This document shows positions 39,646 to 63,460 of a stretch of DNA of 64,000 nucleotides, in pieces (within the stretch, counting starts at the first letter, position 1; each line of letters starts with the position of its first letter). The notes below the pieces were generated by a model. The model worked only from the letters and a program-made list of their open reading frames with translations, was not told the origin of the DNA and searched no databases. Both the position numbers and the translations under genes were made by a program. The DNA lies in the sequence record NC_061445.1. One strand, 5' to 3'.

Positions 39646-39654
39646 TATTTACAG
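39646..39654 (-). promoter_or_regulatory. Class-M motif CTGTAAATA
   Basis: Intergenic, 27 nt upstream of sbcD, downstream of a terminator. Confidence 0.7.
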
Positions 39655-39693: not shown

Positions 39694-39720
39694 AAAAGAG
39701 GCAGCCGAAGCCACCTCTTT
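39694..39720 (-). terminator. Repeated-family terminator GAGGTGGC-TTCG-GCTGCCTC-TTTT
   Basis: After the 39724 stop; compensatory A-T pair relative to other copies. Confidence 0.85.
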
Positions 39721-39723
39721 GAT

Positions 39724-41610
39724 TTACTTCATTGCCGCAAGACGTTTACGGCGCGCTTTGGCTTCTTCGCGCATGTAGACGACTTCTTCCTTTGCTTGGG
39801 CAAGAGCAAGTTCAAGCGCACGATCACAAATGGCCTCAATGACCTGCTCAGGCGTTTCAGTGGTCTGCACGATCAGGTTGCCGCTACGTGAAAGCATCTC
39901 AGCATTAGGATAGAGTTCCTCTCTAGCCTGTCCGATACACAGTTCGTCGTCAATATCAATACGGTAGATCAGTGTGTGAATCTCCGTCTTCTTGAACTTG
40001 TGTTCCTTACGCTCAAGCATAGCACGTAACTTAGAACGGAAATCTCGGCGTGGGTCAATCGCCACATACTTCCAACCGTCGAATACTTTCTTCGCACACT
40101 CGTAGTAACGATCGTCCACACTGTTCTTGTTGCGCTCAAGACTCACAAGAGTCGCAGCAGGACAGAACGGTGACATGTTGGCGAGTGAACCTATAGCAGG
40201 TGCAAGCACATACTCAGCGCGGTAACTATCGCCAAGTTCGTATTCTTCATCAACATACTTGGTCTGCACGTCACCTGTATTGATACGAGATGCGTTGTAC
40301 CAGAATGCGCTCTCAGGGTTGTTGGTGTATTTGACGAACGACCAAATCTGAGACAGAGCAGCAGGGTACGACCAATTGTGAAGACTGTCTTCTCGGTTGC
40401 TGTAGAAGTCTACGTCACCCAGATTCGCATCAAGGAAGTTCTGACGTCTATCACGCGGTAACTTGTCGATGAAGATAGCCATAGCTCTAGGTCTACTGGA
40501 CATCTTCTCCCACAGCATGAGCGTAGTTGGATCGTCAACACCAAGAGTACCGAAGACGATATCAATGAAGTCACCGAACTCTCGATAGTGTTTGTTGACT
40601 AACAGCTCGGTAGCGCTGCGCACATAGAACTTAGGCTGACCCCACTTCTCACGCGCAAGCGTGACTGCAATGCTCGGGTAGCGCTCGATATAGCTCAGGG
40701 CAACGTCTTCCGCTTCTTTGTTCTTCGTAGTAGTCAGGCGTTTGATGAACGCGTTAACATCACCATGCAGCATCGGGCTTTCGAGGTCATAGTCAAACTC
40801 TTCCCAGCGACGATCAGGATAGAGCTTGCTACTCAGTTCGTACATGCCCTTGCGTTCGGTAGTTGCAATGAACGGATTGATGTGTTCGTCCAACCACTCT
40901 TGCAGCACATGGACAAAAGGCATCTTAGAGTCAGGATAGGCGAACTCCACCAGATACAGAGCATTCACTTTCTCAGACCCGACAAACTTATCAGCAGCTT
41001 TCACCTTTGTGCGTTCGAAGTAAGGCTTGGCAAGACAGCGACCGATAGGCTTGTTAATGTTCTTGTCAGCAGGGTCAATCAGGTACGCAATCAGAGTACC
41101 ACCAGCAATATCCTGTTTGACATACTTCTTGTTCGAACCTGTCTTCACGTTCATGCAGCTAACCCATCCACGGTCTGTGGACATGCCCGCAATATCATAC
41201 GGGTGCATCGAGATGCAGATGAGTTGGCGGTTGCGCGTAGCATTCACAATAGACTTGCGATTCGGATCAGAGTCGAACATCTTTTTCAGTTCGGCATTCT
41301 TCGAAAGCACACGGCCGATTTTAACGATACGACCATGAGAGTCTTTCGCAGTACCTGTCAGGTAATCGACAAGCACCATATCTTTTTCCATCAAAGCGTC
41401 TACGATCTGAATTGGAGGCTTGACGTTCTGCGCAACGTTTTTGATCACGTTGTCGCTCTTTGCGTCGATGTAGATACGCATGGCCTTGTGGCCTTTCTTG
41501 CCGCTAATCTTTTCGAAAAGACTAAGCAACGTGGGATTTGGTTTCCATCCCTTTCTATACTTACGATAGATAGAAGGAGGTAACGCAGAGAGACTTACTT
41601 GAATTTCCAT
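39724..41610 (-). CDS. Hypothetical protein (628 aa) with N-terminal MEIQVSLS; putative internal virion protein
   Basis: Shared N-terminal peptide; ACGCTAATTTT upstream. Confidence 0.7.
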   Translation of the reverse strand: MEIQVSLSALPPSIYRKYRKGWKPNPTLLSLFEKISGKKGHKAMRIYIDAKSDNVIKNVAQNVKPPIQIVDALMEKDMVLVDYLTGTAKDSHGRIVKIGRVLSKNAELKKMFDSDPNRKSIVNATRNRQLICISMHPYDIAGMSTDRGWVSCMNVKTGSNKKYVKQDIAGGTLIAYLIDPADKNINKPIGRCLAKPYFERTKVKAADKFVGSEKVNALYLVEFAYPDSKMPFVHVLQEWLDEHINPFIATTERKGMYELSSKLYPDRRWEEFDYDLESPMLHGDVNAFIKRLTTTKNKEAEDVALSYIERYPSIAVTLAREKWGQPKFYVRSATELLVNKHYREFGDFIDIVFGTLGVDDPTTLMLWEKMSSRPRAMAIFIDKLPRDRRQNFLDANLGDVDFYSNREDSLHNWSYPAALSQIWSFVKYTNNPESAFWYNASRINTGDVQTKYVDEEYELGDSYRAEYVLAPAIGSLANMSPFCPAATLVSLERNKNSVDDRYYECAKKVFDGWKYVAIDPRRDFRSKLRAMLERKEHKFKKTEIHTLIYRIDIDDELCIGQAREELYPNAEMLSRSGNLIVQTTETPEQVIEAICDRALELALAQAKEEVVYMREEAKARRKRLAAMK

Positions 41611-41640
41611 TAGCGTTTCTCAGTGTTCGAATGGTGCAAA

Positions 41641-41647
41641 AAATTAG
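41641..41647 (-). promoter_or_regulatory. Class-L motif (ACG)CTAATTT(T)
   Basis: Intergenic, 31 nt upstream of 41610. Confidence 0.6.
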
Positions 41648-41669
41648 CGTAGAAATGACAAACGCCCCG

Positions 41670-42179
41670 TTAGGAGCGTCTATTGAATTTGAGCCAGTCA
41701 TTCCACCAGTAGGCAACAGGCTTGTTTTGTTTGAGTGCGTAGTCGATGCAGTTCTGCGTACCAGAAGGAGCACCGCAGCACAGGGAGATCAATCTGTCTG
41801 TCTCATCGACCATGTAGTGATTTCGTTTGTTCAGAGCAAATCCTGCTTGACCATCCATGTGCTCCCAATCTTCTTTCGAAGTGACTATGCGCACCTCATG
41901 ACTTTTGTTGAGCAGACCATCAAGTTCAAACACGCTACTGATTGTCCATCTGGAATTGAACCCAGGATAAGGCAGACATGAAACAACTTTGTGGCCTAGG
42001 TCGATTGCAGCAGTCGCTACTGCCATATCGAAACCTAGAGCACACCCCACATAGATGATAGCATCGTCCTCTATCGCAAGGACTTTTCTACGAGCGAACG
42101 TATAGAGGCGGCGTTTCGCCTCAGGGCTAAAGCCTCCAAGATACTGAGGACGATGGCCAGTGAAGGATATCTTTTCCAT
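41670..42179 (-). CDS. SLOG-superfamily protein, YspA/DUF1273-like (169 aa)
   Basis: ISFTGHRP, GCALGFD, LPYPG, RNHYMVD, SGTQNCIDYA. Confidence 0.85.
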   Translation of the reverse strand: MEKISFTGHRPQYLGGFSPEAKRRLYTFARRKVLAIEDDAIIYVGCALGFDMAVATAAIDLGHKVVSCLPYPGFNSRWTISSVFELDGLLNKSHEVRIVTSKEDWEHMDGQAGFALNKRNHYMVDETDRLISLCCGAPSGTQNCIDYALKQNKPVAYWWNDWLKFNRRS

Positions 42180-42185
42180 GTAGGG

Positions 42186-42194
42186 TATTTACAG
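42186..42194 (-). promoter_or_regulatory. Class-M motif CTGTAAATA
   Basis: Only 6 nt separate it from the SLOG ATG; no RBS. Confidence 0.6.
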
Positions 42195-42219
42195 AAGCAC
42201 TTCCCTGTGCGTGGTCTGC

Positions 42220-42585
42220 TTAGACGACTACTTCAAGCTGGTGGTCACCTGAGTTCCACACCATCTCACGAATGTTGCGTGGCATGATGATGCAGCCGCT
42301 TGATGCAGTGCCTGGCGCTTTAATGCTGTCACCATGCATCTGGAATGCAGAGCGACCGAACATCACGTTGTCAGCAGCAGGAGTCAAGTCCATTGCGTAT
42401 GGTCCTGTCTTTGCGCTGGTGCGTGGTGCGTTCAACGTATAGTGACCGACAGGCAGTGGTCCCATGCCAACAACTGCTTGCGACTCGTGCTTGTTCTTGT
42501 GCTGGCCTTTACCTGCATAGCCGGTAGCGACAACTTTACCTGCTGCGTTATACAGGCGGCCTGTAGTTTGCTCATATTTCCACAT
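42220..42585 (-). CDS. Tlde1/DUF2778-like L,D-transpeptidase-fold protein (start corrected to MWKYEQ, 121 aa)
   Basis: GGAG RBS; W.Y.Q.TG.L, GY.G.G, GPLP.G.Y, GRS.F..HGDS.....ASSGC. Confidence 0.85.
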   Translation of the reverse strand: MWKYEQTTGRLYNAAGKVVATGYAGKGQHKNKHESQAVVGMGPLPVGHYTLNAPRTSAKTGPYAMDLTPAADNVMFGRSAFQMHGDSIKAPGTASSGCIIMPRNIREMVWNSGDHQLEVVV

Positions 42586-42610
42586 AGGTACTCCAATATG
42601 TGTATAATGG

Positions 42611-42641
42611 AAAAAGGGCCTACACCTTTCGATGCAAGCCC
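42611..42641 (-). terminator. Rho-independent terminator
   Basis: GGGCTTGCATC-GAAA-GGTGTAGGCCC-TTTTT with G:U pairs on the minus strand. Confidence 0.75.
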
Positions 42642-42646
42642 CAGTA

Positions 42647-42784
42647 TTAGACGATGATCGTCTTAACAACGTTACGGTTCTTCTTTGGGTCGAACCACAC
42701 TTCTTCAATAATCTTGCCCATGCCAAAGTTTATCATCTGCACAGTGCGTCGGCTGACGAGTTGCAGACGTTTAGACTGGAACAT
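42647..42784 (-). CDS. Small hypothetical protein (45 aa, MFQSKRLQLVSRRTVQMINFGMGKIIEEVWFDPKKNRNVVKTIIV), not in ORF track
   Basis: GGAG RBS; fills the space exactly between the 42787 stop and the terminator. Confidence 0.65.
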   Translation of the reverse strand: MFQSKRLQLVSRRTVQMINFGMGKIIEEVWFDPKKNRNVVKTIIV

Positions 42785-42786
42785 GA

Positions 42787-43296
42787 TTACTCCTTAATCA
42801 TTTTGACACGCGTGTGGTCGAAGATACCAAACGTTGGTACGTCATGGTGTTCGCCCTCGTTACCCTTGATCGAGTCATATCCCGCGAGACGCAGAATCTT
42901 ACTGATCTCAGTGTATTCATCCCACCACATATACACACGCTTGTGCATACCTTCTGGGATTACTTTTGCCAACGTGTCTAATCGTTTGACAAGGGTCATC
43001 GCCTCATCTTTGCCCACCAGCTTTAACTGAAAGGCTTCCATGATGAGTTGCTTCACTCGTCTATGAATCTCAGCGAACTTTACTTCCGTCCACAGAGAAC
43101 GGAATTTCAGGCTAGCGTACCTGCCTGGGTCCGCATGAAATCGGTAGAGTCTCCCACCTTCTGCATACTTCTCAGCATACGCACGATCTGGTGTTACCCA
43201 AGTCATGTGTTGCTTCTTAGCATGATCGTCAGACCAATCTTCGGCCAGACCGCGATAGTAGATGGTGGGAGAACTCAGACTGACAAAGATCTGCAT
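42787..43296 (-). CDS. ADP-ribosyltransferase-fold-like protein (169 aa) with N-terminal MQIFVSLS
   Basis: IYYRGL, WVTPDRAYAEKYA, GRLYRF, AGYDSIKG, FGIFDHTRVK resemble the ART-PolyVal pattern. Confidence 0.5.
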   Translation of the reverse strand: MQIFVSLSSPTIYYRGLAEDWSDDHAKKQHMTWVTPDRAYAEKYAEGGRLYRFHADPGRYASLKFRSLWTEVKFAEIHRRVKQLIMEAFQLKLVGKDEAMTLVKRLDTLAKVIPEGMHKRVYMWWDEYTEISKILRLAGYDSIKGNEGEHHDVPTFGIFDHTRVKMIKE

Positions 43297-44318
43297 TACG
43301 CGTTATACTGAGTCAGGGGCTTAGGCTTACGCGCTACACGCTTAGTCTTTGCCTCAGGGATTTTCAGATCACGCAACTGCTGTTCGATCTTGTCAACAGT
43401 TGTACCATTACGTTTAGCCATATCAGGCGTAATGCTACCAGCCATAAGCTGACCAGGATTGTCTAAAACGATCTTGCTACCGACACGTCGGAAGTTCCAG
43501 TTATCACGCGCCCACTTCGCACTAAACTGAGTAGTGGTGGCATGTTTGAACACATCCTTAAAAGACTTGTCTACAATAGCAGAGACCGTTTTAGGCTTTT
43601 TTCCGGTAAGCATCTCCTCTCGCTGTTTCTTCAACGCTTTCTTCTTAGCAGGGGAGTACGCGCCTGTGATAGCGTTTTTGTTTTTAGGGAAGAGCTTGGC
43701 TTTCTCACGCTCAATCTGCGCCTTAGTGACAGTCTTTTTCTTCTGACCGGGTTTCACTTTACGATCAGAAGGAGAGCTGCCAGTACCACCAGCCATTTTC
43801 TCCGCCTTAACAAACTTAGGCTTGAACATACCGCGCTTACCGGTGACACCAAACTCAGTCAGCTTGATCGCACGAACGGCTTTCAATGCTTTGGCAAGAC
43901 CTGGGCCTGACAGCACAAGGTCAGATGCAGACAGAGGAAGATTCAAACCACCCAGGTGATGTTTCTTAGCGTGGGCATTTGCTTCTTTGATCAGAGCTTT
44001 CGCCTGCTTAATGTCAGCAGAAGATTTTGCTTTTTCTGTTTTGTAGGTTTCACGCAGAGCAGTCTTACGTGGTCCTTTAGGTGTCTGGCCAGCTTTGGTG
44101 AAAGCAGTAGCTGCTTTAATGCGAGCAGACATACCGCTAATAGCCGCAGTCTTGGCTTTCTTCAAAAGGCCAACAACAGCTTGCAGTTCAGGCTTGGACT
44201 CGGTCGCTACAACCAGAGTAGTAGCCCCGCCAACACGCGCAACTTTGTACGCCTGCGGTTTAATACGCGCAGACTCAGACAGAAGATTGTCTGCGAGATT
44301 GATTTTAATTAGTGCCAT
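43296..44318 (-). CDS. Basic Lys/Ala-rich putative internal virion protein (start corrected to MALIKI, 340 aa)
   Basis: GAGG RBS; K/A-rich; N-terminal LLSESA. Confidence 0.65.
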   Translation of the reverse strand: MALIKINLADNLLSESARIKPQAYKVARVGGATTLVVATESKPELQAVVGLLKKAKTAAISGMSARIKAATAFTKAGQTPKGPRKTALRETYKTEKAKSSADIKQAKALIKEANAHAKKHHLGGLNLPLSASDLVLSGPGLAKALKAVRAIKLTEFGVTGKRGMFKPKFVKAEKMAGGTGSSPSDRKVKPGQKKKTVTKAQIEREKAKLFPKNKNAITGAYSPAKKKALKKQREEMLTGKKPKTVSAIVDKSFKDVFKHATTTQFSAKWARDNWNFRRVGSKIVLDNPGQLMAGSITPDMAKRNGTTVDKIEQQLRDLKIPEAKTKRVARKPKPLTQYNA

Positions 44319-44329
44319 TTTTGAGTTCC

Positions 44330-44935
44330 TCAAATCAAGGCATGACCGGGAAGGTCGAAGTTTTTACCTGCGGCATAATCACCAAGCGCCTGATACAGCG
44401 AGTTACGCAGCATCTGACCGATGATATCTGAGTTGTGTGCTGACGGGTCCTTGAAAGCAACCTCGATCGCATCAGTGCGCGGATTAACTACGGCATAACG
44501 CAGAGGACAAATCGTCTGCACTTTACACCAAGTGTCCACACGATCTTGTAGTTCAGGCGTCATCTGAATTTTGAAGTCAGACAACTGAAACACAAGACTC
44601 TGAATAGGCGGAGGAGCCGATAAGGAGATGAACTTACCGTTAGCGTTCAGTCTCTCCATAGCCATAGCCGCGTCGTAGATCGACTGATAACCTTCACTGA
44701 CAGTAGTGAGGCCACTCAGTTTAAAGCTATGCGTTGTCAATCCTTTGCGAATCAACTTGGCGATTTTGAGTTCGTAATCACCAGAATCATCTCGCATGAA
44801 AGTGACGAACGCGTAGAAGGCGAAGCCATCGTCTTCACGTAAAAGTCTGTGATCTAATACGCGAAAGCCCACGACACTTTGCAGTGCCTGGGCTGTGATT
44901 TGCGTCGCCTTAGAAAGGGAAACGTAGATTTCCAT
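44330..44935 (-). CDS. Hypothetical protein (201 aa) with N-terminal MEIYVSLS
   Basis: Shared N-terminal peptide; internal FISLSA; TAATG coupling. Confidence 0.7.
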   Translation of the reverse strand: MEIYVSLSKATQITAQALQSVVGFRVLDHRLLREDDGFAFYAFVTFMRDDSGDYELKIAKLIRKGLTTHSFKLSGLTTVSEGYQSIYDAAMAMERLNANGKFISLSAPPPIQSLVFQLSDFKIQMTPELQDRVDTWCKVQTICPLRYAVVNPRTDAIEVAFKDPSAHNSDIIGQMLRNSLYQALGDYAAGKNFDLPGHALI

Positions 44936-45270
44936 TAACGCAGACGAGCGAGAGCCTTTTTAGCTTCTGCCAGAGAAGGCTGAATATCACCTTCATCGTC
45001 GAACTCACCTTCGTAGCGCAGATCGATGCCTGTCACGTTGAAGCCTTCGTCTTCGTCTTTGGTGATGATGCCGAAGCGAGCAGTGTCACCGTTAACGCCG
45101 ATAAAGCGCATGTCGAGAATGTCGTTCGGACCGCTCAGGTCAGACGGCATACCGTCGTCGATGATTGCGAACAGTGCTTTCTTGTCCAGACCCTTAAAGA
45201 AAGCAGCCAGTGCAGGTGCAGCAGATTGGGATTTAACAGCATCGTTCAGTTTCAGTTTGATCAGAGACAT
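44935..45270 (-). CDS. Hypothetical protein (111 aa), putative virion protein
   Basis: GGAG RBS; N-terminal VKSQSA. Confidence 0.65.
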   Translation of the reverse strand: MSLIKLKLNDAVKSQSAAPALAAFFKGLDKKALFAIIDDGMPSDLSGPNDILDMRFIGVNGDTARFGIITKDEDEGFNVTGIDLRYEGEFDDEGDIQPSLAEAKKALARLR

Positions 45271-45272
45271 GG

Positions 45273-45845
45273 TCAGTTTACTCCAACTTGTTTAGTGATT
45301 GTGATAACACGCTGGTACCAACCATAAATGTTATCTTCCTGAGTTTCGTCTGCCTTGGCGATGTTCTTCAACTTCGCAATACGACAGCCATTATAGGCAT
45401 AAGCCAGAACTTTGATATCACGCACTTTGCAGTACGCAGCAAGAGCAGCGAGCGTCTTCGGTCCAACATTTGCAGCAGGTGCAAAGTCAGGGTAGAGCCT
45501 GCCGCGACCGTTGAGAATATTCAACTGGTCTTGCAATTCAGCGATTGCTGCTGGTGGCCCTGAGTTAACGGCGTAGTCAAACACCCACAGTGCCAGCTCC
45601 TGAGAAAACTTGGCGATCTCATCGCACTTGCAGAAGTCCCAGAAGTTCTTGCTGTAGATAGCGTAAGCGATCTCATACGGCAAGTTTTGCATATCGCCAG
45701 TGTAACCGTAAGCGCGAGCATTCTTTTGAGTAACGCCCCAACGAGTCGGACCACCACGGTCTGCTGATCGATTCGTATAGGTAGAGCCGCCCTCACGGTC
45801 AATCACTTCGGCAATAGCGTTCTTACGAAACGTTAATGCGTCCAT
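45273..45845 (-). CDS. Glycoside hydrolase family 108 lysozyme with C-terminal PG-binding domain (190 aa); putative endolysin
   Basis: REGG...N..ADRGGPTRWGVT, FD.AVNSG, GPKTL.A, GW..RV motifs. Confidence 0.9.
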   Translation of the reverse strand: MDALTFRKNAIAEVIDREGGSTYTNRSADRGGPTRWGVTQKNARAYGYTGDMQNLPYEIAYAIYSKNFWDFCKCDEIAKFSQELALWVFDYAVNSGPPAAIAELQDQLNILNGRGRLYPDFAPAANVGPKTLAALAAYCKVRDIKVLAYAYNGCRIAKLKNIAKADETQEDNIYGWYQRVITITKQVGVN

Positions 45846-45871
45846 AATAGATTCCTCTTTTAGACGAACTA

Positions 45872-45878
45872 AAATTAG
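45872..45878 (-). promoter_or_regulatory. Class-L motif (ACG)CTAATTT(T)
   Basis: 27 nt upstream of the lysozyme. Confidence 0.6.
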
Positions 45879-45880
45879 CG

Positions 45881-46756
45881 TTAAACGGTTAACTTTTTAT
45901 ACTTAAAGCTGATCTTAGGTTGAGTGCCCGGATCAGCAGAGACAGGAACAAAATCATCACTAGACAGACTGATAAATGCCTTTAGTGCAGCGTGATAGCA
46001 AAATGCCTTGTCGAGAATAACTGATTCGTCTGCGAGATCTGCCTGACGTTGATACATGCGAGCATCAGTAGTCGATGCAGCGGAGAGCGCAGGCGTACCG
46101 TAACCGCTGTTAGCCACAACACCAGCACTGACAGCAGCTTGCAGCAGTTTAAACTCGGTAGATATTGAGGCACTTGTAGGTATCGCTATGGTTTTATCAC
46201 AGGCCGAAACGTTCGTGGTAATCGAAGCAGTGTATGTAAACTGATTACCCTGATCGTGAACATAACGAAAACCTATATTGACTGTACCAGACTGACCGTA
46301 AGGACAGTTAGTACCTGCAAGCTGCACAGGAGGAAGGACAATTGTCGGGTCAGTCAAGTCTGCCATGCTCTTAACGCCGTACGTCAGGAACAGGGTTGTG
46401 TTGATACCGACACCCATACCATAACTTTGTTCTTCGGCGAATGTAGTTAGGCCCGAGATAGTCCCAGCACCTGAGTATGACACGATATCAGTCGTTGCTT
46501 CGATGAGAGCAGATCTAAGTCGTGTGTACTTTAGAGGGCAGAAGTAATAGCGCCCAGCTTTGCGCCCACGAACAGTATTACAAAAGCCATTAAAGCCTAA
46601 AACGCTACGAGCACGTTTCGCCAAGAGGTTGGCATCTGTAAGGTTGGTTGCAGATACGGTTGGTTCTTCTCGACTGTCAAACAAGAATACATTTGGGTGA
46701 GCATCAGTCGGTCCTGATAGTCCAGAAAAAGATGATATATACTGCATGGTTTCCAC
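45881..46756 (-). CDS. Hypothetical protein (291 aa), possibly structural
   Basis: GAGG RBS; ATAATTT variant upstream. Confidence 0.65.
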   Translation of the reverse strand: METMQYISSFSGLSGPTDAHPNVFLFDSREEPTVSATNLTDANLLAKRARSVLGFNGFCNTVRGRKAGRYYFCPLKYTRLRSALIEATTDIVSYSGAGTISGLTTFAEEQSYGMGVGINTTLFLTYGVKSMADLTDPTIVLPPVQLAGTNCPYGQSGTVNIGFRYVHDQGNQFTYTASITTNVSACDKTIAIPTSASISTEFKLLQAAVSAGVVANSGYGTPALSAASTTDARMYQRQADLADESVILDKAFCYHAALKAFISLSSDDFVPVSADPGTQPKISFKYKKLTV

Positions 46757-46795
46757 CTCAGAATATTGAGTAAAGGTGCTACGTACTTGACATAA

Positions 46796-46802
46796 AAATT
46801 AT
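46796..46802 (-). promoter_or_regulatory. Class-L motif variant ATAATTT
   Basis: Intergenic, 40 nt upstream of 46756, downstream of a terminator. Confidence 0.45.
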
Positions 46803-46815
46803 CTGTAGGAACGAC

Positions 46816-46835
46816 AAAAGGGGCCGAAGCCCCTT
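46816..46835 (-). terminator. Rho-independent terminator
   Basis: AAGGGGC-TTCG-GCCCC-TTTT overlapping the 46834 stop. Confidence 0.8.
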
Positions 46836-47151
46836 AGAATGTCCAACGTGTCAACCAAACGATCACTACAGGCCAGATGCCTATATGAGCCAAATAAGCA
46901 AAGCGCATCAGCTTACCTTTGATGTACTTACCGATAACGATCTCATTCAATGCTCCGTACACGCCAGCAAAAGCAGAGAACAACAGAACGAGAAATGCAA
47001 TCTGGTCTGTACTCATTTCAAAGATGCGATAGCCTGCTACGACGAATACCACACAGGAGAAACCGAGAGTCCCGTAGATAGACGATGAGGAAGCGTTCGG
47101 CTTGAACACGATATCGTACAGGCCAAAGCTCAACAGAATCGACAGCAGCAT
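46834..47151 (-). CDS. Small membrane protein (105 aa, 3-4 predicted TM helices)
   Basis: Four hydrophobic stretches; TAATG coupling supports start 47151. Confidence 0.65.
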   Translation of the reverse strand: MLLSILLSFGLYDIVFKPNASSSSIYGTLGFSCVVFVVAGYRIFEMSTDQIAFLVLLFSAFAGVYGALNEIVIGKYIKGKLMRFAYLAHIGIWPVVIVWLTRWTF

Positions 47152-47468
47152 TAACGCTTGGTAATCGGCTGACATGCGCACTCCACATCTTCTACACTGA
47201 TAGGTTTCTTGCGGCGCATATCAAGTGCGAGTTGTGCCTTACGTCCGATACGTGCCATAGACTCAAGGTCTTCGTCAGAGTAACCGCTCATGCTTTCTGT
47301 GACGATAGCCATCTTTGTCATCTGGCTAGGAGTCAGATCGTACTGGTCGATGCCGTCAACAAGACCAACACCGAACCCTGCAATCTTGTTCCAGACGTCA
47401 GGCACGTTGTCATCGACTTTAACCATCAACGTTCCGTGACGCGCTACATCGTGAATATTACGAGTCAT
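47151..47468 (-). CDS. Hypothetical protein (start corrected to MTRNIH, 105 aa)
   Basis: GGGAG RBS before ATG 47468. Confidence 0.65.
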   Translation of the reverse strand: MTRNIHDVARHGTLMVKVDDNVPDVWNKIAGFGVGLVDGIDQYDLTPSQMTKMAIVTESMSGYSDEDLESMARIGRKAQLALDMRRKKPISVEDVECACQPITKR

Positions 47469-47469
47469 A

Positions 47470-48189
47470 CTAAACTCCCTGATTGGCGAGATAAGTATCG
47501 GTGATGTTCGAGGTCTTCTCAACGTTACCGCGAATATAACCAATTTCGAATACCTGAACGTTGTGTTTGACAACAGCTTCACCCACTGTCTCACACGTAC
47601 CGTTATTCAGATCAATAAACGCCTGACACAAACGGTCTGCGACAGGCTTGGCTAAGATCTTCATCAGCGTATGCTTCTGCACTGCGGACAGTTTGATTGG
47701 CAGTGCGTCAATCTCACGCTCGATGTTCTTCTTACCGCCATCATAAATCCAACGACAGATGGTTGCAGTCAAAGGCTTCTGGTGAGTCTTCGACGGCAAC
47801 GTATAGATGTAGGTCATCAGTCGGTAGAACAGGCTGCCGTCAATCGCACGACGTTTGAGATCGTCCAGATACTTGCCAACAGGTTGCAGCTTGGCTTTCT
47901 GTGGAACCATCTCGTCGAGTTTGAGATCAACGTCGAGGCCGTAGCGCTTCAACGTTTCACTGTGACCAAACACGTAGACGATATGATCAGGCATGTCACG
48001 AATCGCAACAGCGTTACGCGAATACTCACGCGAGCCAACAACGAAAATGTACTTACGATATTTCTTCGAAGGATCAAGCGTACCACCAGCAGGAACAAAC
48101 GTCACGCGGTCAGCATGTCCTTTCTTTTTAAGCCAGCCCATGACTTGCTCTGGGCTTTGGCGTGTTACAGCGATTACAGGCATTGTCAC
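47470..48189 (-). CDS. Hypothetical protein (239 aa)
   Basis: Operon packing downstream of sbcC. Confidence 0.7.
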   Translation of the reverse strand: MTMPVIAVTRQSPEQVMGWLKKKGHADRVTFVPAGGTLDPSKKYRKYIFVVGSREYSRNAVAIRDMPDHIVYVFGHSETLKRYGLDVDLKLDEMVPQKAKLQPVGKYLDDLKRRAIDGSLFYRLMTYIYTLPSKTHQKPLTATICRWIYDGGKKNIEREIDALPIKLSAVQKHTLMKILAKPVADRLCQAFIDLNNGTCETVGEAVVKHNVQVFEIGYIRGNVEKTSNITDTYLANQGV

Positions 48190-48509
48190 TCCACCGTATC
48201 GAGAAGTTGTGATGTGAACTCACGCAGGCGCGCTTCGAGAAACTTACCAGTCTCTGGATGACAGATGAGCTGGTCGTTTTTCAGATAGACACGATTCGAC
48301 GGTCTAAGCACTTTGCGCTTTTTAGGATTCATGCGCAGCGCTTGATGCACCGGTGTTGCGTAGAAGTCTTCTTCGACTTCATCCATGCAGTTCACATTGA
48401 ACACCACTTCGTACTTCGCAAACAAATGCAGGTTACGCGTGATAGTGCCCATGTCTATTGGTACGCTGTGCTTCTCATGATCGCGATTAAGCTGTCCGAA
48501 GATCATCAC
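48186..48509 (-). CDS. Hypothetical protein (107 aa)
   Basis: Overlaps sbcC stop; AAGG RBS. Confidence 0.65.
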   Translation of the reverse strand: MMIFGQLNRDHEKHSVPIDMGTITRNLHLFAKYEVVFNVNCMDEVEEDFYATPVHQALRMNPKKRKVLRPSNRVYLKNDQLICHPETGKFLEARLREFTSQLLDTVE

Positions 48510-50836
48510 ATCACCTTACGTGTTAATACGGACGTGCCGTTCTTCTTGGTCACTGTCCATTGATTATCTGAGAAGTGCTCGACACCGTTAGGCGTTATCC
48601 AGTAAACGTTCGGGATAATCTGCTTGAGTATCGGCAGGAAGTTATTGACGATGTGCTCACTTACTGCTGGGCTGCAACTGTTATCAGGTTCGTCCAGAAC
48701 GATGAAGTTAGTACGACGACCAGCTGGTATGAACGGCATGATCGCAACAGCAAACAACAGGCGGAAGCAGTTAGTCTCTGCGCCACTCATGATTGCAATG
48801 TCTGTGGTCTTCTTAGAAGTCACACGCGTAACAGTCGCACCAACACCCTGCTTGGTAGTAAACAGTTGGAAGCGCATAGGCTCAGGGAACACAAGGCCGC
48901 TGTACTCATTCAGCTTCGCTTCAATCTGCTGCAATCGACCTTCAACTGCTTTCAGCTTGAGTGCGTTGTTGCTGTATGCTTTGTACAGGACTTCGAATAC
49001 CTTACGCTTATCGATCATCGGCTGGAGCTTGGCCAACTTGGTACGCAGTTCACGCAGCGTTTCCTCGTAGTGCTCATGCTCCTGAATACGCATCTGAATG
49101 CCCTGAGCTTTGCGGTCTTTCTTCTCGATATCCGTGATGAGTTTGTTGAGTTCCTTCTCAATCTTTTTGTATCGACCATCGAGAACGTAGAACGGGTCTT
49201 CAGGTTCGCCTACAGCTTTCAGTGCAGAAGTCAGGTCTTTCAGAATCTCAAGATCCTTGATACGGTTCTTGATCGTCTTACGCGCTTTCTTCGGCTGCTT
49301 AACCGCTTTAGGTTTCTTGAGAGCGTCACGCTTCGCCACCAGCTTCTCGTACTTCTTAGCGGCCTCGAATTGTTCTTCCATCGTATCGAGTTTCTTCCCG
49401 ATAGACTTCAACTGCTTCTCAAGTTCTTTGCGGTCATGCTTAGGCTTCTTCACCTTGTTGTCTTTCAACGCGGTGAGTTCTGCATTCAGCTTGTGGTAGT
49501 CAATCGCTTCGATACACTCATCAATGATTGCCTGAGCTTTCGTTGCAGCGCGTGACATAGCTTTCAGGTCAACGTCTTGTCCGCAGGTAGGGCAAGAGTT
49601 ACCGTCATGGTCGTGCTCCTCAAACGCACGATACGCCTGAACTATCGCTTTGGATTCTGCTCGGGCATCTTGTGCCTCTTCCTGAGTTCGTTTAGGAGCT
49701 TTGAGCTTAGACAGCTTTTTACTGAGCTTGTCAACTGCTTCTCGCCAGTCGTCGTATTCTTCTTGTTGCTCATCAACTTTCTCCAACAGCTCCTGCAGGC
49801 TTTCTTCTTCCTTGACCAAAGCGCTGTGCTTCTTACGCAGCTTTTTGTTGTCGAGGTCAGCAACATCGCCGAGAGCTTTGATTTTCTTTTTGACCGATGC
49901 GAGTTCTGCTTCGTATTCTTCGAGGTCAGACACGTACTCATCGTAACGGTCAAACTCCACCAGCATACCACGAAGGTTATTCAGTTCACCTTTCGGATCG
50001 TCAGACTCAATGCCGAGCGTATCGAGCTGGTGCTTGAGCTTTTCGTACTTACGCGCAGACGAACGAGCAGAGCCGAGATCAATCAACTCTTCACCTAAAC
50101 GGTTACGGCGTTTCTTCAACTTGTCCGACTGTTCGATGATGGCTGCAAGCGTATTCTTTTCCTGAGCGTGAATGTCCAGCGCGTTCTGTTTACGCTGCGT
50201 CACGTCAAGCATATCAGCCAAGCCTTTAGATTCTGTCTCTGCTTCTTTCGCAAGGTCCAGTTTCTTTTTCAGCGCGATACGGATGTTATCGAACACATCA
50301 AGGCCGAATAGGTTTGTCAGATACTTGAGTCGATCAGCAGGTGACGAACGCTGGAACGGATGTTCAATCTGCGACTGAATGTAGCAGTAGCTATAGAACT
50401 CCTCACGCGTTAATGGCCAGTGCTTAGTCACCCAAGAACGTGCAACGTCCTGACGATCTACTTTCTGGTCTTCACCGTTGTAGTAAACTTTGTACTTGGT
50501 CTTCGTCTGCACGATGCGAACGATGCCACCAAGAGGTGAGTGCCACGACAGGTCAATCGAGCTATCCTTGCCGAGCATGTTACCCTTGTCTTTCTTTTTC
50601 AGAGCAAGCGGGTCTGCTTCATACAGCAATGTTGGGATAGCACCGAACAGGAGGCTTTTGCCTACACCATTCGTGTTGTCTTTGACGTTTGGACTATCGA
50701 GGTTCTTACCACAAATAGTTGCGAAGCCTTCACTGTCCAGTGTGTCGATATCAAGCTCTTTGTACACGCCAACATCGCGGAGATGAATCTCTTTCAGGCC
50801 GATGCCGTGGTTATGTTTCTGCTTCGCTTTGCCCAT
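48506..50836 (-). CDS. sbcC: SbcC/Rad50 (T4 gp46-like) ABC ATPase (776 aa)
   Basis: Walker A GKN...NGVGKS, long coiled coil with CPTCGQ zinc hook, MSGAE signature, VLDEPD Walker B. Confidence 0.92.
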   Translation of the reverse strand: MGKAKQKHNHGIGLKEIHLRDVGVYKELDIDTLDSEGFATICGKNLDSPNVKDNTNGVGKSLLFGAIPTLLYEADPLALKKKDKGNMLGKDSSIDLSWHSPLGGIVRIVQTKTKYKVYYNGEDQKVDRQDVARSWVTKHWPLTREEFYSYCYIQSQIEHPFQRSSPADRLKYLTNLFGLDVFDNIRIALKKKLDLAKEAETESKGLADMLDVTQRKQNALDIHAQEKNTLAAIIEQSDKLKKRRNRLGEELIDLGSARSSARKYEKLKHQLDTLGIESDDPKGELNNLRGMLVEFDRYDEYVSDLEEYEAELASVKKKIKALGDVADLDNKKLRKKHSALVKEEESLQELLEKVDEQQEEYDDWREAVDKLSKKLSKLKAPKRTQEEAQDARAESKAIVQAYRAFEEHDHDGNSCPTCGQDVDLKAMSRAATKAQAIIDECIEAIDYHKLNAELTALKDNKVKKPKHDRKELEKQLKSIGKKLDTMEEQFEAAKKYEKLVAKRDALKKPKAVKQPKKARKTIKNRIKDLEILKDLTSALKAVGEPEDPFYVLDGRYKKIEKELNKLITDIEKKDRKAQGIQMRIQEHEHYEETLRELRTKLAKLQPMIDKRKVFEVLYKAYSNNALKLKAVEGRLQQIEAKLNEYSGLVFPEPMRFQLFTTKQGVGATVTRVTSKKTTDIAIMSGAETNCFRLLFAVAIMPFIPAGRRTNFIVLDEPDNSCSPAVSEHIVNNFLPILKQIIPNVYWITPNGVEHFSDNQWTVTKKNGTSVLTRKVM

Positions 50837-51024
50837 TAGATGTACTCGCAGGTCTGTTCTTGAATCAGGCCTTTACCGTGAGTCTGTTCGAACACTTCGA
50901 TCTCATCATCGGTATAAGGCTCACCTGCTTCTGCGATAACGTCATACGAAATTGATTCGTCACGCGTATCTGACACAACAGGTTTGATGAGTCGCCACAG
51001 AGGTAATGCAGTTTTAGTAGTCAT
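50836..51024 (-). CDS. Hypothetical protein (62 aa)
   Basis: TAATG coupling on both sides. Confidence 0.6.
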   Translation of the reverse strand: MTTKTALPLWRLIKPVVSDTRDESISYDVIAEAGEPYTDDEIEVFEQTHGKGLIQEQTCEYI

Positions 51025-51233
51025 TAGTGAAATACCTTCTGGCGTTCAACCCAAAGATCAGCAGCACGATACACCTTACGCAGTTCTTCCAGCTTTGCTT
51101 CTGGAACAGGTGTTGGTGAAGAGAAGATGCACTGCGGTGTCTTCTCCTCTTTGCCTGTTACTGGATTGATATCGGTATCGTGACGCATTACGTTCCAGCA
51201 CCCGTTAGTGCGGATATTGATAGTCTGTTCCAC
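51024..51233 (-). CDS. Hypothetical protein (69 aa)
   Basis: GTG start, AGGT RBS; class-M motif upstream. Confidence 0.6.
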   Translation of the reverse strand: MEQTINIRTNGCWNVMRHDTDINPVTGKEEKTPQCIFSSPTPVPEAKLEELRKVYRAADLWVERQKVFH

Positions 51234-51269
51234 TGCAATGTACCTATATTTGGTCTAAATGATATATGC

Positions 51270-51278
51270 TATTTACAG
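51270..51278 (-). promoter_or_regulatory. Class-M motif CTGTAAATA
   Basis: Intergenic; heads the operon containing sbcC. Confidence 0.7.
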
Positions 51279-51296
51279 TTTTAAGGTGTATAGACG

Positions 51297-51328
51297 AAAA
51301 GAAGGGCCACCCTTAGGCAGCCCCTTCG
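51297..51328 (-). terminator. Rho-independent terminator
   Basis: GGGGCTGCC-TAAG-GGTGGCCC-TTCTTTT overlapping the 51313 stop. Confidence 0.65.
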
Positions 51329-51831
51329 TACACTTTGCGTTTGCCACCGTCCATGTAGTGGTCTGCATAGAACGGACCGCTAACACCTTTGAGGCCTAGT
51401 TTATTTTTAAGGGTATTCTTACGCGCGAACACATACTTCAAATGCTCGTTGCGTTTTCTTCTGCGCTCTGGCGACCAACCCTTCATCTCGTTTTCAATCT
51501 TACGCACTGAGGCATCGAGAGAAACGAGGTTCTGATAATCGTTGGTTGCTTTGCTGCACGATGAGAATACCTTACGCACACCGTTGTCGAGATAGTGGTC
51601 TTCGTAGAAAGGACCGCTAACATCGTCTAAGCCTATTCGACGTCTAAGCTGACGGTGCAGACGCTTCGGCCACACCAGCTCGTCATCAATCAGGTAGATT
51701 ACTGCGGGCATTGCTTCGCGCTGATCGTTAAGCAGAGAATTGATCTTCGCGTCGATGCGACACAACTCTTTGTAGTCGTCATGAGGCGAAGGACATTGCG
51801 CTTTGGATAAATCGACAGTGAGTTCCATCAA
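51313..51831 (-). CDS. Hypothetical protein (172 aa) with internal duplication; N-terminus MELTVDLSK
   Basis: GLDDVSGPFYEDHYLDNGVRKVF / GLKGVSGPFYADHYMDGGKRKVY repeat. Confidence 0.7.
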   Translation of the reverse strand: MMELTVDLSKAQCPSPHDDYKELCRIDAKINSLLNDQREAMPAVIYLIDDELVWPKRLHRQLRRRIGLDDVSGPFYEDHYLDNGVRKVFSSCSKATNDYQNLVSLDASVRKIENEMKGWSPERRRKRNEHLKYVFARKNTLKNKLGLKGVSGPFYADHYMDGGKRKVYEGAA

Positions 51832-52274
51832 TACCTCCGAGGCTTTTTAGGCTTCTTGATAGCTGACTTAGGTCGCTTGATACGTTGCAGTGCCTTACGC
51901 GCTTCGACAATCTGCTTGGCGACAGTAGCACGACGCTCTTTGATTTGCGCAGTGTCCTGTTCAGTACCTTTCAGTTTATCAAGACGGTTCCACTCTTTGA
52001 CCAAGCGATCAACTACAGCAGCACGGGAAACGCGTTGCTGATTGACACGCACAATGTCCTGCTGGGTCTTAACTGAGTTGCGCGTAGCATTGACTTCATC
52101 ACGCGCTGACGTTACGCCTTTGGTATCGCCCTCAGATTGCTTGTCGTTGAGTTTCTTACGAGCAACAGCAGCACGGCGTTGTGCTCCCTTGAGATCGTCT
52201 TTCGAGTTCTCTAAGGAAACTTTTGTGTCTTCAAGTGGGCTGGTGCGCACACTCAAACTAACTTGAATTTCCAT
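51828..52274 (-). CDS. Basic coiled-coil protein (start corrected to MEIQVSLS, 148 aa)
   Basis: GGAG RBS; the extension in the ORF track runs through a terminator. Confidence 0.7.
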   Translation of the reverse strand: MEIQVSLSVRTSPLEDTKVSLENSKDDLKGAQRRAAVARKKLNDKQSEGDTKGVTSARDEVNATRNSVKTQQDIVRVNQQRVSRAAVVDRLVKEWNRLDKLKGTEQDTAQIKERRATVAKQIVEARKALQRIKRPKSAIKKPKKPRRY

Positions 52275-52290
52275 GACGGCTCCAGAAATG

Positions 52291-52317
52291 AAAAAGGGCA
52301 GCCGAAGCCACCCTTTT
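52291..52317 (-). terminator. Repeated-family terminator GGGTGGC-TTCG-GCTGCCC-TTTTT
   Basis: Identical core to the 23129 copy; lies only 17 nt upstream of the next ATG. Confidence 0.75.
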
Positions 52318-52404
52318 GTAGATGGCGCGCTATGCACCCGACTGTTAAGTCTACTACGATTATTTTACCTCGCAGTAGTGGGCGAGGAGATTAGGATCAC
52401 CTCC

Positions 52405-52941
52405 TCATGCTGATTGAAGATCGAGAAGTTCCTCGTCTTCGATATCAGCGGCAGACCACGAACGAAGCACGGAAGCATTGCCGCGATTGCCTGTCAACAT
52501 CATTTTGATTGACGGCTTAGCATCGCGCTCTGCATAGTGATCGATAAGAGCTTTCTCTGTACCGAACCACAGAATGGAGTGACCACCTTTAGGGCAGATT
52601 AAGAACTGCGCCGGACGCTGAGGTACGTTCAACGTCATGTAGAAATCGCCAGCACCTGTAGGGCCCATCATAGGCATAGGCTTCATGACAGCCATGAAGT
52701 CGTTAGCATCTTTCAGACGCTTATCGCCGAGCAACCACAGTGCGCCTTCTTCACCTTCACGCACGGCAGACAATGTGCCTTTACGAGTAGTGATAGATCC
52801 GAATGTGTCTTGATCGAAGCGGGCCAGACCAAAGATAAGTGATGCAAGTTTCTTCAGGTCAGGGGTCGTGCATGGGCTGTCAATTTTCGCCATGCCCTCA
52901 GACCCAAGTGTAATCTTCGAGAGTGAAACAAAGATTTCCAT
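52405..52941 (-). CDS. Hypothetical protein (178 aa) with N-terminal MEIFVSLS
   Basis: Shared N-terminal peptide; ACGCTAATTTT upstream. Confidence 0.7.
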   Translation of the reverse strand: MEIFVSLSKITLGSEGMAKIDSPCTTPDLKKLASLIFGLARFDQDTFGSITTRKGTLSAVREGEEGALWLLGDKRLKDANDFMAVMKPMPMMGPTGAGDFYMTLNVPQRPAQFLICPKGGHSILWFGTEKALIDHYAERDAKPSIKMMLTGNRGNASVLRSWSAADIEDEELLDLQSA

Positions 52942-52977: not shown

Positions 52978-52984
52978 AAATTAG
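52978..52984 (-). promoter_or_regulatory. Class-L motif (ACG)CTAATTT(T)
   Basis: Intergenic, 37 nt upstream of 52941. Confidence 0.6.
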
Positions 52985-53008
52985 CGTCCCATCAGACATT
53001 TCTGAAAT

Positions 53009-54358: not shown

Positions 54359-54367
54359 TATTTACAG
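54359..54367 (-). promoter_or_regulatory. Class-M motif CTGTAAATA
   Basis: Intergenic, 37 nt upstream of dnaX. Confidence 0.7.
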
Positions 54368-61623: not shown

Positions 61624-62283
61624 TTACTTTTTCTGCGAAACACGCTTCCCGAGCTTGACGCCGATTTGAGTCATGATGCGTTTGACAGTCTCCCCGTCGT
61701 GTTCAGCCATTGCACTCGCTAAACGTTCGCCCTGTTCACGCGATAGCTCTGGCATAATCATTTTCAGCATCTGTGAGCGCATCTTAGCTGATTTAGAGCG
61801 TCCTTTCGAGACAGACACGCCTTCATTCACCTTGAGCGCATTGCTAATCGCTTTCTGCACACGACGATCACCGAAGATATCGCCGAATACGTCACCGAAC
61901 AGGTCTTTGAACGATAGACCACCGCTCATAATGTCGTTTTTCGTGAAACGCACAGGCTGTCCGAGAGCGTTTGTCTTCGTGCAGTGCGTGGATTCAACTT
62001 CGTTCGTTGTGCGTCCACCAGCACGGAAGTTCTCGTCAGGACGTGACGCTTTGCCCTCTGCGCCTGGCTTCGTGTTGCCATTACGCAGATCTGCATCACC
62101 TTCAACAGCTTTATCCGGGTCGAACATGTCGTCCGCTTTTGCGCTTTGATTCGCATCAAACGGAATCTTACCTGTCAGCTTGTTTGGATCTGGCCAACTG
62201 TCCGGGATATCAGACGCAGGTTGTGGTTTGTTCGTCATATCACCGTTAGCTTCGCTGCTCAAGCTGATCTTAATACGTGCCAT
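61624..62283 (-). CDS. Hypothetical protein (219 aa), N-terminus MARIKISLSS; putative internal virion/scaffold protein
   Basis: AGGAG RBS; ISLSS motif; disordered N-half. Confidence 0.7.
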   Translation of the reverse strand: MARIKISLSSEANGDMTNKPQPASDIPDSWPDPNKLTGKIPFDANQSAKADDMFDPDKAVEGDADLRNGNTKPGAEGKASRPDENFRAGGRTTNEVESTHCTKTNALGQPVRFTKNDIMSGGLSFKDLFGDVFGDIFGDRRVQKAISNALKVNEGVSVSKGRSKSAKMRSQMLKMIMPELSREQGERLASAMAEHDGETVKRIMTQIGVKLGKRVSQKK

Positions 62284-63426: not shown

Positions 63427-63433
63427 AAATTAG
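63427..63433 (-). promoter_or_regulatory. Class-L motif CTAATTT
   Basis: 23 nt upstream of 63404 in the divergent intergenic region. Confidence 0.55.
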
Positions 63434-63460
63434 TGACTAAAAATTTCTACCTTCGACCTA

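Follow-up and report, generated by a model that had tools for sequence, protein, structure and literature searches.

A shared N-terminal octapeptide on unrelated proteins of Erwinia jumbo phage pEa_SNUABM_3 and its relatives: a candidate virion address

Tagged genes of the window

The stretch of DNA analysed here, 64,000 nucleotides (nt) in full and referred to as the window, is identical (100% identity) to part of the genome of the Erwinia jumbo phage pEa_SNUABM_3 (genus Alexandravirus; NC_061445 / MZ443770, 266,175 bp), in which record coordinates equal window coordinates plus 124,000. Its minus strand carries a set of genes whose otherwise unrelated products begin with the same octapeptide, M-E/Q-I-x-V-S-L-S or a variant of it, here called the tag. 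Six genes display the canonical form: gp189 (39724-41610; 628 amino acids (aa); MEIQVSLS, tag codons at 41587-41610), gp193 (42787-43296; 169 aa; MQIFVSLS), gp195 (44330-44935; 201 aa; MEIYVSLS), gp206 (51313-51828; 171 aa; MELTVDLS), gp207 (51828-52274; 148 aa, basic and coiled-coil-like; MEIQVSLS) and gp208 (52405-52941; 178 aa; MEIFVSLS). A sister form, M-[AST]-[LRV]-I-[KR]-[IL]-[NS]-[LI], starts gp194 (43296-44318; 340 aa, very basic and of low complexity; MALIKINL), whose stop overlaps the gp193 start, and gp196 (44935-45270; 111 aa; MSLIKLKL), whose stop overlaps the start of gp195; it is also found, shortened, on gp250. The hybrid tag of gp221 (61624-62283; 219 aa; MARIKISLS) is intermediate between the two forms. 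These are taken as one tag because the positional orthologues of gp194 and gp196 in phage JA11 carry the canonical form (MKVILSLS and MIVEIDLS, respectively).

An earlier, sequence-only reading of this DNA had listed five strict copies, with starts at 41610, 43296, 44935, 52274 and 52941, and the looser MARIKISLS at 62283, all of which were found where it had placed them. MELTVDLS is present as well, its start being the ATG at 51828 and not the claimed 51831, which is an upstream TTG. The count itself was too low. When the complete record is read in all six frames, M[EQ][IL]x[VI][SD]LS, the strict pattern, turns up seven times, each time at an annotated start: the six genes above and gp233 (MEIYVSLS), which lies outside the window. 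Near variants, also outside it, occur on gp242 (MEMLVSLS) and on the NUDIX hydrolase gp122 (MMIKVSLS), a looser pattern adds gp151 (MILSVSAS), and the sister form on gp194, gp196 and gp250 had likewise been missed.

Chance is excluded as the origin of the motif. The strict pattern occurs six times in the window and never in 300 shuffles of it, and M-[EQK]-[ILV]-x-[VI]-S-L-S starts six genes of the window and 10 genome-wide. Among open reading frames (ORFs) of at least 80 aa across the genome, the looser pattern follows 10 of 648 first methionines and none of 1915 later ones (Fisher p = 1e-6); the genome-wide scan thus finds a real motif that is confined to protein starts. Similarity had been said to stop right after it, which is borne out by BLASTP: once the first nine residues are removed from 12 tagged proteins, the best pairwise match has E = 0.7.

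The conservation lies in the peptide. Across nine paralogous tags valine is encoded by all four of its codons, leucine by five codons, and both serine positions by the TCN as well as the AGY family; pairwise identity at codon positions 1, 2 and 3 is 0.63, 0.73 and 0.34. The scrambled codons and the low third-position identity therefore indicate selection on the peptide rather than on an mRNA element. The sequence-only reading had treated the motif as an amino-acid signal, and in this respect it withstands the codon analysis.

The tag is an add-on, joined to the cargo domain through a variable linker. In gp122, whose Pfam NUDIX domain spans residues 21-141, the N-terminus reads MMIKVSLS-AKLPSEKKPRK-QSG; the orthologues of Yoloswag (58.8% identity) and of the JA phages (50.7%) retain the tag next to changed linkers (MEIIVSLS-ARDKSHLQPRI-QSG in Yoloswag, MKVFLTLD-EGDGRKPRK-QSG in JA11). 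Metagenomic relatives start with MEITVSLAS, MEIAVAS or MRISISS, followed by about 20 variable residues, and the tagless PaBG-like form (MRTRKSSG) begins directly at the core. The tagged NUDIX orthologues hold the tag at the extreme N-terminus, 13-29 residues ahead of the conserved core. Among tagged proteins the Pfam domain begins at residue 21-33 in NUDIX, ART-PolyVal and Acb1 members, and the linkers measure 5-21 residues. In an AlphaFold (AF2) model of gp189 built from 96 homologues (pLDDT 92.6, pTM 0.82) residues 1-11 form an unpacked coil, with pLDDT below 50 for residues 1-4. A search for protease sites C-terminal to the tag was dropped, glutamate being too common to give a signal, and so was a reading of the tag as a clamp-binding motif, in view of its variable position 4 and the absence of a terminal aromatic residue.

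The tag is already useful as a marker of start sites, as it corrects start-codon calls in deposited genomes. The gene for AD1 gp191 (contig L008, 8773-9372) has been called 46 codons too short and that for the Yoloswag NUDIX protein (L020, 20001) four codons too short, while Yoloswag gp225 (L025, 41079) uses a TTG start.

Spread of the tag and its cargo

The tag extends far beyond this phage, a point missed in the sequence-only reading, and is found in Yoloswag, JA11, Lu11 and many metagenomic jumbo-phage contigs. It is kept in the orthologues of Alexandra, AD1, Y3 and eleven IMG/VR relatives. Yoloswag encodes nine tagged proteins, including a new cargo of 545 aa, and JA11 twelve, among them a clear ART-PolyVal protein (E = 2e-27). 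A 265-kb contig (L026) carries seven consecutive tagged genes, which start with MQILVSTS, MERLLVSLS (SprT-like), MKILISLS, and MKIQISLS and MKILISLA (both ART-PolyVal), the remaining two being gp189-family proteins. On a 172-kb contig (L028) there are four, including one that puts MKIFVSLS on the anti-CBASS enzyme Acb1. Lu11 uses its own version, MKIQLAVA, on 14 adjacent genes, among them three of the gp189 family, one for a topoisomerase-I-like and one for an ART-PolyVal-like protein. In more distant aquatic contigs the tag is degenerate, and PaBG and NCTB appear to be tagless.

The lineage consensus is MEIxVSLS in Alexandravirus, MKILISLS in L026 and MKIQLAVA in Lu11. Within a genome the same consensus stands on all cargo, and it differs between lineages; the tags have therefore drifted in concert, a pattern that marks co-evolution with a single reader or else mutual compatibility among the tags.

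Orthologues of gp207 start with MKILISLS, MEIMVSLS, MEILISLS or MQVLISLS and that of gp221 in Yoloswag with MKLKINLS, while the Yoloswag orthologue of gp208 has lost the tag. A related-locus search with gp208 and a word-based homologue search with gp193 returned close Alexandravirus relatives only, which is uninformative on portability.

Where tagged proteins have a named domain, it is ART-PolyVal (E = 1e-30, 2e-27), Acb1 (2H family, anti-CBASS), NUDIX, an SprT-type metallopeptidase or KMPT-N. Each protein annotated by Pfam has a single domain, except for the relatives of gp151, which combine KMPT-N and SprT; for most cargo proteins Pfam and PHROGs name no function. The same domain set is known in fused form from polyvalent proteins, for which Iyer et al. 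(2017; PMC5512222) argued that they are packaged and then enter the cell together with the injected DNA. The ART-PolyVal, metallopeptidase, 2H and NUDIX repertoire found here stands in a virion-gene context. In Tunturi_5 an ART-PolyVal domain lies in a 1362-aa 'MutT/NUDIX hydrolase' encoded within the structural module, between head-tail connector and tail genes, and in a crAss-like phage the same ART domain occurs under a gene annotated as a putative RNA-polymerase subunit. Other tagged proteins are marked by composition: gp194 and gp207 are extremely basic, gp233 and gp242 extremely acidic, and all four are of low complexity, which is typical of internal head proteins.

Two KMPT-N genes lie outside the window. 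The product of gp144 (record 110897-112039), directly beside the prohead protease gene, combines KMPT-N with an HExxH motif; gp151 (record 118152-119999) combines KMPT-N with the tag-like start MILSVSAS and is preceded by a GCTAATTT motif.

The label 'ART-like' that had been given to the 169-aa gp193 could not be confirmed. The protein has no Pfam match at E<=0.1 and no PDB sequence match; in hhalign comparisons it reaches 1.6-1.7% probability against the L026 ART-PolyVal proteins and at best 20% against the tagged ART-PolyVal-like Lu11_0205, over residues 1-45, where YYRG is aligned to YYHG. An AF2 model from a shallow alignment (pLDDT 55.8) was too poor for a fold search. At most, gp193 may be an ART-PolyVal-like protein that has diverged.

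gp189-family virion proteins and promoter-like motifs

The N-terminal domain of gp189, about 270 aa long, belongs to a very large jumbo-phage family, of which an exhaustive profile-free search recovered 2048 cluster representatives at E<=1e-3. Relatives occur on metagenomic contigs of 172-354 kb, in Lu11, RsoM2USA, HRDY3 and Atu_ph07, and in two uncultured phages of 640 kb. The tag, with the consensus M-[KE]-[IL]-x-[IV]-S-L-S-A, starts 63 of the best 150 matches, and the others differ at the N-terminus. The domain is also found inside an 1844-aa protein that starts with ART-PolyVal. It bears an invariant signature, S-x-H-P-Y-D ... S-x-x-R-x-W-x-S-C. A PDB sequence search with gp189 gave no match, and Foldseek comparison of its model yielded no significant match in the PDB and only uncharacterised phage proteins in BFVD.

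Two members of this family are known from mass spectrometry as abundant virion components. Atu_ph07 gp394 was detected in virions by 18 peptides (41% coverage), against 20 peptides (43%) for the portal (PMC6102473, Table S5), and its relationship to gp189 is confirmed by Foldseek (E = 1.5e-14). RsoM2USA ORF132 forms one of about 10 Coomassie-visible bands of purified virions, at 76.64 kDa (PMC8504454); its computed mass is 76,624 Da. The PaBG proteome consists of only 14 bands. The Atu_ph07 and RsoM2USA data support the packaging of the gp189 family, and not the claim that the tag is what packages it.

Two short conserved motifs, GCTAATTT and CTGTAAATA, lie 30-50 nt upstream of genes. Of the first there are 15 exact copies in the record, 10 or 11 of them on the coding strand and 32-50 nt ahead of a start. 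Copies of GCTAATTT precede operons beside the portal, a sheath-like gene and the endolysin, as well as the PAAR/baseplate and connector operons, and others precede the tagged genes or operons gp189, gp208, gp123-gp122, gp151 and gp250. The more general form [GA]CTAATTT, kept across five genera, lies 30-37 nt ahead of the endolysin gene and of tagged and structural operons. Within the window it occurs on the minus strand at 41641-41648, ending 30 nt upstream of the gp189 start (kept in Alexandra and Yoloswag); at 45872-45879, upstream of the endolysin gene gp197, where it heads the co-directional run gp197-gp196-gp195-gp194-gp193; and at 52978-52985, ending 36 nt upstream of the gp208 start. 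A ACTAATTT variant at 63427-63434 (minus strand) lies upstream of gp222 and heads the pair gp222-gp221. Two tagged genes had been described as directly preceded by ACGCTAATTTT, which in fact ends 30-36 nt upstream of the ATG.

CTGTAAATA has 38 copies in the record and is likewise kept across five genera. It lies roughly 35-50 nt ahead of replication and recombination genes, among them those for the clamp loader, SSB, a sigma factor and the ligase, and the depositors of Lu11 annotated the same motif as a middle/late promoter. Its minus-strand copies in the window lie at 54359-54367, upstream of the clamp-loader gene gp209, and at 39646-39654 (gp188), 42186-42194 (gp190) and 51270-51278 (gp205). 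The assignment of genes to one or the other motif is kept in Alexandra, AD1, Y3, Yoloswag and JA11 despite different flanks. Through their shared motif the tagged genes therefore fall into the same regulatory class as virion and lysis genes, a class that is presumably late.

Between the operons, also on the minus strand, are five strong hairpins that resemble terminators and have loops of four bases, which read TTCG in three cases, at 39695-39720, 42615-42642, 46818-46835, 51302-51325 and 52292-52317. Two of them are followed by the same TCATTTCTG, and one, which no promoter motif follows, separates gp208 from gp207.

Several neighbouring features accompany the tagged genes. Within the tagged protein gp206 a unit of about 23 residues occurs twice, as GLDDVSGPFYEDHYLDNGVRKVF and GLKGVSGPFYADHYMDGGKRKVY; gp206 orthologues in several relatives are only 94 aa long, one repeat unit fewer. 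The untagged gp191 (42220-42585, minus strand; 121 aa) lies amid tagged genes and carries a Tlde1 domain (E = 3e-15), an L,D-transpeptidase-like type VI effector family. The adjacent gp190 (41670-42179, minus strand) is annotated 'GTP-binding domain'; its best Pfam match is the YspA SLOG family, at E = 1.6e-5 and below the curated cut-off. A paralogous family of proteins of about 285 aa that start with MQY (MQYISSF, MQYCCAQ, MQYIAAP, MQYLSSF) is represented by gp198 (45881-46747) and on the Alexandra contig L007 (4287-7827); its genes are interleaved with tagged genes and vary in copy number among relatives.

Destination of the tagged proteins and comparison with known systems

The octapeptide is very probably a portable recognition peptide that is read by one common partner. 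Its outline (M, a polar residue, I/L/V, any residue, V/I, S, L, S) would give a short amphipathic, strand-like peptide, and the partner, probably phage-encoded or else self-complementary, would use it to gather about a dozen unrelated proteins. The virion is the favoured destination, with somewhat better than even chances. It may be inferred that the tagged proteins are made late, alongside virion parts, loaded into the prohead interior, carried in the virion and ejected with the DNA into the next cell, where they could act ahead of any phage gene expression. They might ADP-ribosylate targets, destroy nucleotide immune signals, or act as NUDIX hydrolases or metallopeptidases, and the highly charged members might coat the DNA. 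The reader might be a docking site on the shell or scaffold, a head-module ATPase that threads the proteins, or the tags themselves, zippered onto a gp189 carrier; the candidate ATPase is gp143, a 679-aa protein so annotated in PHROGs that has no Pfam match to back a role as a BCS1-like translocase. The core of the original proposal is upheld: the tag is portable, is under selection as a peptide and stands on unrelated proteins that are mostly directed against the host. Loading into the head is supported indirectly, by the cargo domains, the gp189-family virion proteins and the shared promoter motif.

Several observations weigh against a virion address. Both virion-proven gp189 relatives, of Atu_ph07 and RsoM2USA, have an untagged-type N-terminus, so their packaging does not require the tag. 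No tagged protein has been observed in a particle, and a virion proteome for Alexandravirus, Y3, Yoloswag, JA or AD1 did not turn up in literature searches. No conserved glutamate or other protease site occurs at a fixed distance after the tag, and the Yoloswag NUDIX linker contains no glutamate at all. The designation of the GCTAATTT class as late derives only from the genes that follow the motif, and gp233 and gp242 lie among replication-side genes, where they have no exact copy of it. Lastly, the partner that reads the tag is so far a postulate.

An alternative that leads to the same destination and needs no separate receptor is that the strand-like tags zip the proteins to one another into one body, for example a condensate or a bolus resembling an inner body, which would enter the head on a gp189-family carrier. 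The packaging of gp189 relatives that lack the tag would fit such a carrier, as would the finding that gp189 in tag-bearing lineages carries the same tag as the other cargo; the alternating hydrophobic pattern of the tag, its concerted drift within each genome and the highly charged, low-complexity character of gp194, gp207, gp233 and gp242 point the same way. Eight residues would nevertheless make a weak zipper, and a single receptor accounts equally well for the concerted drift, so that co-assembly is considered unlikely.

The tag could instead be recognised by an AAA+ machine or protease, whether of the host (ClpXP, ClpAP, Lon) or of the phage, and serve as a degron or as a handle for unfolding, so that potentially toxic effectors would be short-lived. 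AAA+ substrates are classically laid out in this way, with a short terminal peptide joined to a flexible linker, potentially toxic enzymes are among the cargo, and the 679-aa 'ATPase' is encoded in the head module. The consensus differs, however, between phages of related hosts, and among Pseudomonas phages Lu11 is tagged and PaBG appears not to be, which is more in keeping with a reader on the side of the phage than with a conserved host protease. As it also leaves the family-level virion evidence and the structural-type promoter unexplained, this possibility appears quite improbable.

The peptide might also address proteins elsewhere: to the cell envelope, to a factory for replication or assembly in the cytoplasm, or to the tail lumen or baseplate. 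As a myovirus, the phage has PAAR and spike genes, a tagged 83-aa gene of Yoloswag lies within the tail module, and the tagged NUDIX gene adjoins baseplate genes in several lineages. Cargo of contractile injection systems bears N-terminal leaders of roughly 50 residues, and the tag is far shorter; it also has no signal-peptide character, and the tagged genes lie mostly outside tail modules, which makes such a destination very improbable. Finally, a translation-initiation or other mRNA element, to which three tagged genes that overlap the upstream stop (TAATG, suggesting coupled translation) might have pointed, is effectively refuted by the scrambled synonymous codons (third-position identity 0.34), and this or a functionless ancestral relic is hardly credible given that the tag persists in orthologues of about 50-60% identity while the linkers change and that it stands on domains of clearly independent origin (NUDIX, ART, 2H/Acb1, SprT).

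Should the tag prove to be a virion address, the injected proteins of hundreds of jumbo phages that are known from metagenomes alone could be listed from the N-terminal pattern, which would also flag new counter-defence candidates, several tagged proteins having no known domain; the tagged Acb1-type enzyme belongs to a class that destroys CBASS signals. Effectors that are fused in giant polyvalent proteins elsewhere would then be deliverable as separate tagged units, and the tag would offer a short handle for loading chosen proteins into large capsids. A broader proposal is that it represents a general, previously undescribed loading system of a large, mostly uncultured jumbo-phage clade, with a mechanism (zippering or ATPase threading) unlike that of the scaffold-bound T4 capsid-targeting sequence (CTS). 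This remains doubtful; were it true, a scan for the lineage tags would read out the whole injected counter-defence arsenal (ART, Acb1, NUDIX, peptidases and many proteins of unknown function). No account of the tag was found in the searchable literature, and it is best placed by comparison with four known systems.

Polyvalent proteins (PMC5512222) share with the tagged set their domains, including the gp189 type, and the proposed delivery with DNA. They are giant polypeptides with 2-15 conflict-related domains each, fused to MuF or portal, whereas the proteins described here are separate, small and tagged. In phage P1, the N-terminal region of DarB directs the protein into the head (PMC9024508). 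The Dar system is thus alike in that an N-terminal determinant loads counter-defence proteins into the capsid, and it differs in the longer region, the ordered, helper-dependent incorporation and the lack of a short consensus on many cargo proteins. Encapsulin cargo-loading peptides sit at the C-terminus and dock cargo inside an HK97-fold shell, in a defined pocket of its protein. They resemble the tag as short peptides of hydrophobic and small residues that are attached to diverse cargo by a flexible linker; the tag, by contrast, is strictly N-terminal.

The closest parallel that had been drawn is the CTS of the T4 internal proteins IPI, IPII and IPIII (Mullaney and Black; reviewed in PMC9958956 and PMC9026906). 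Both are short N-terminal peptides common to unrelated proteins and in principle portable, and in T4 these are late genes whose cargo, like the largely anti-host and in part highly charged set found here, includes anti-host and charged DNA-associated proteins; for the tagged genes lateness would follow from their regulatory class. The analogy holds for the shared peptide and is unsupported in two respects, namely the cleavage site after the tag and the virion-proven relatives, which do not carry it. The T4 sequence ends at a prohead-protease site (hydrophobic-x-Glu) and is removed, whereas no conserved site follows the tag, which has a strand-like I-x-V-S-L-S core, a variable linker, 10-14 proteins per genome and many lineages with their own variant, and whose role in packaging is a presumption. 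In motif, linker, lack of a cleavage site, cargo number and distribution, the tag is therefore not a member of the T4 CTS, P1 DarB or polyvalent families.

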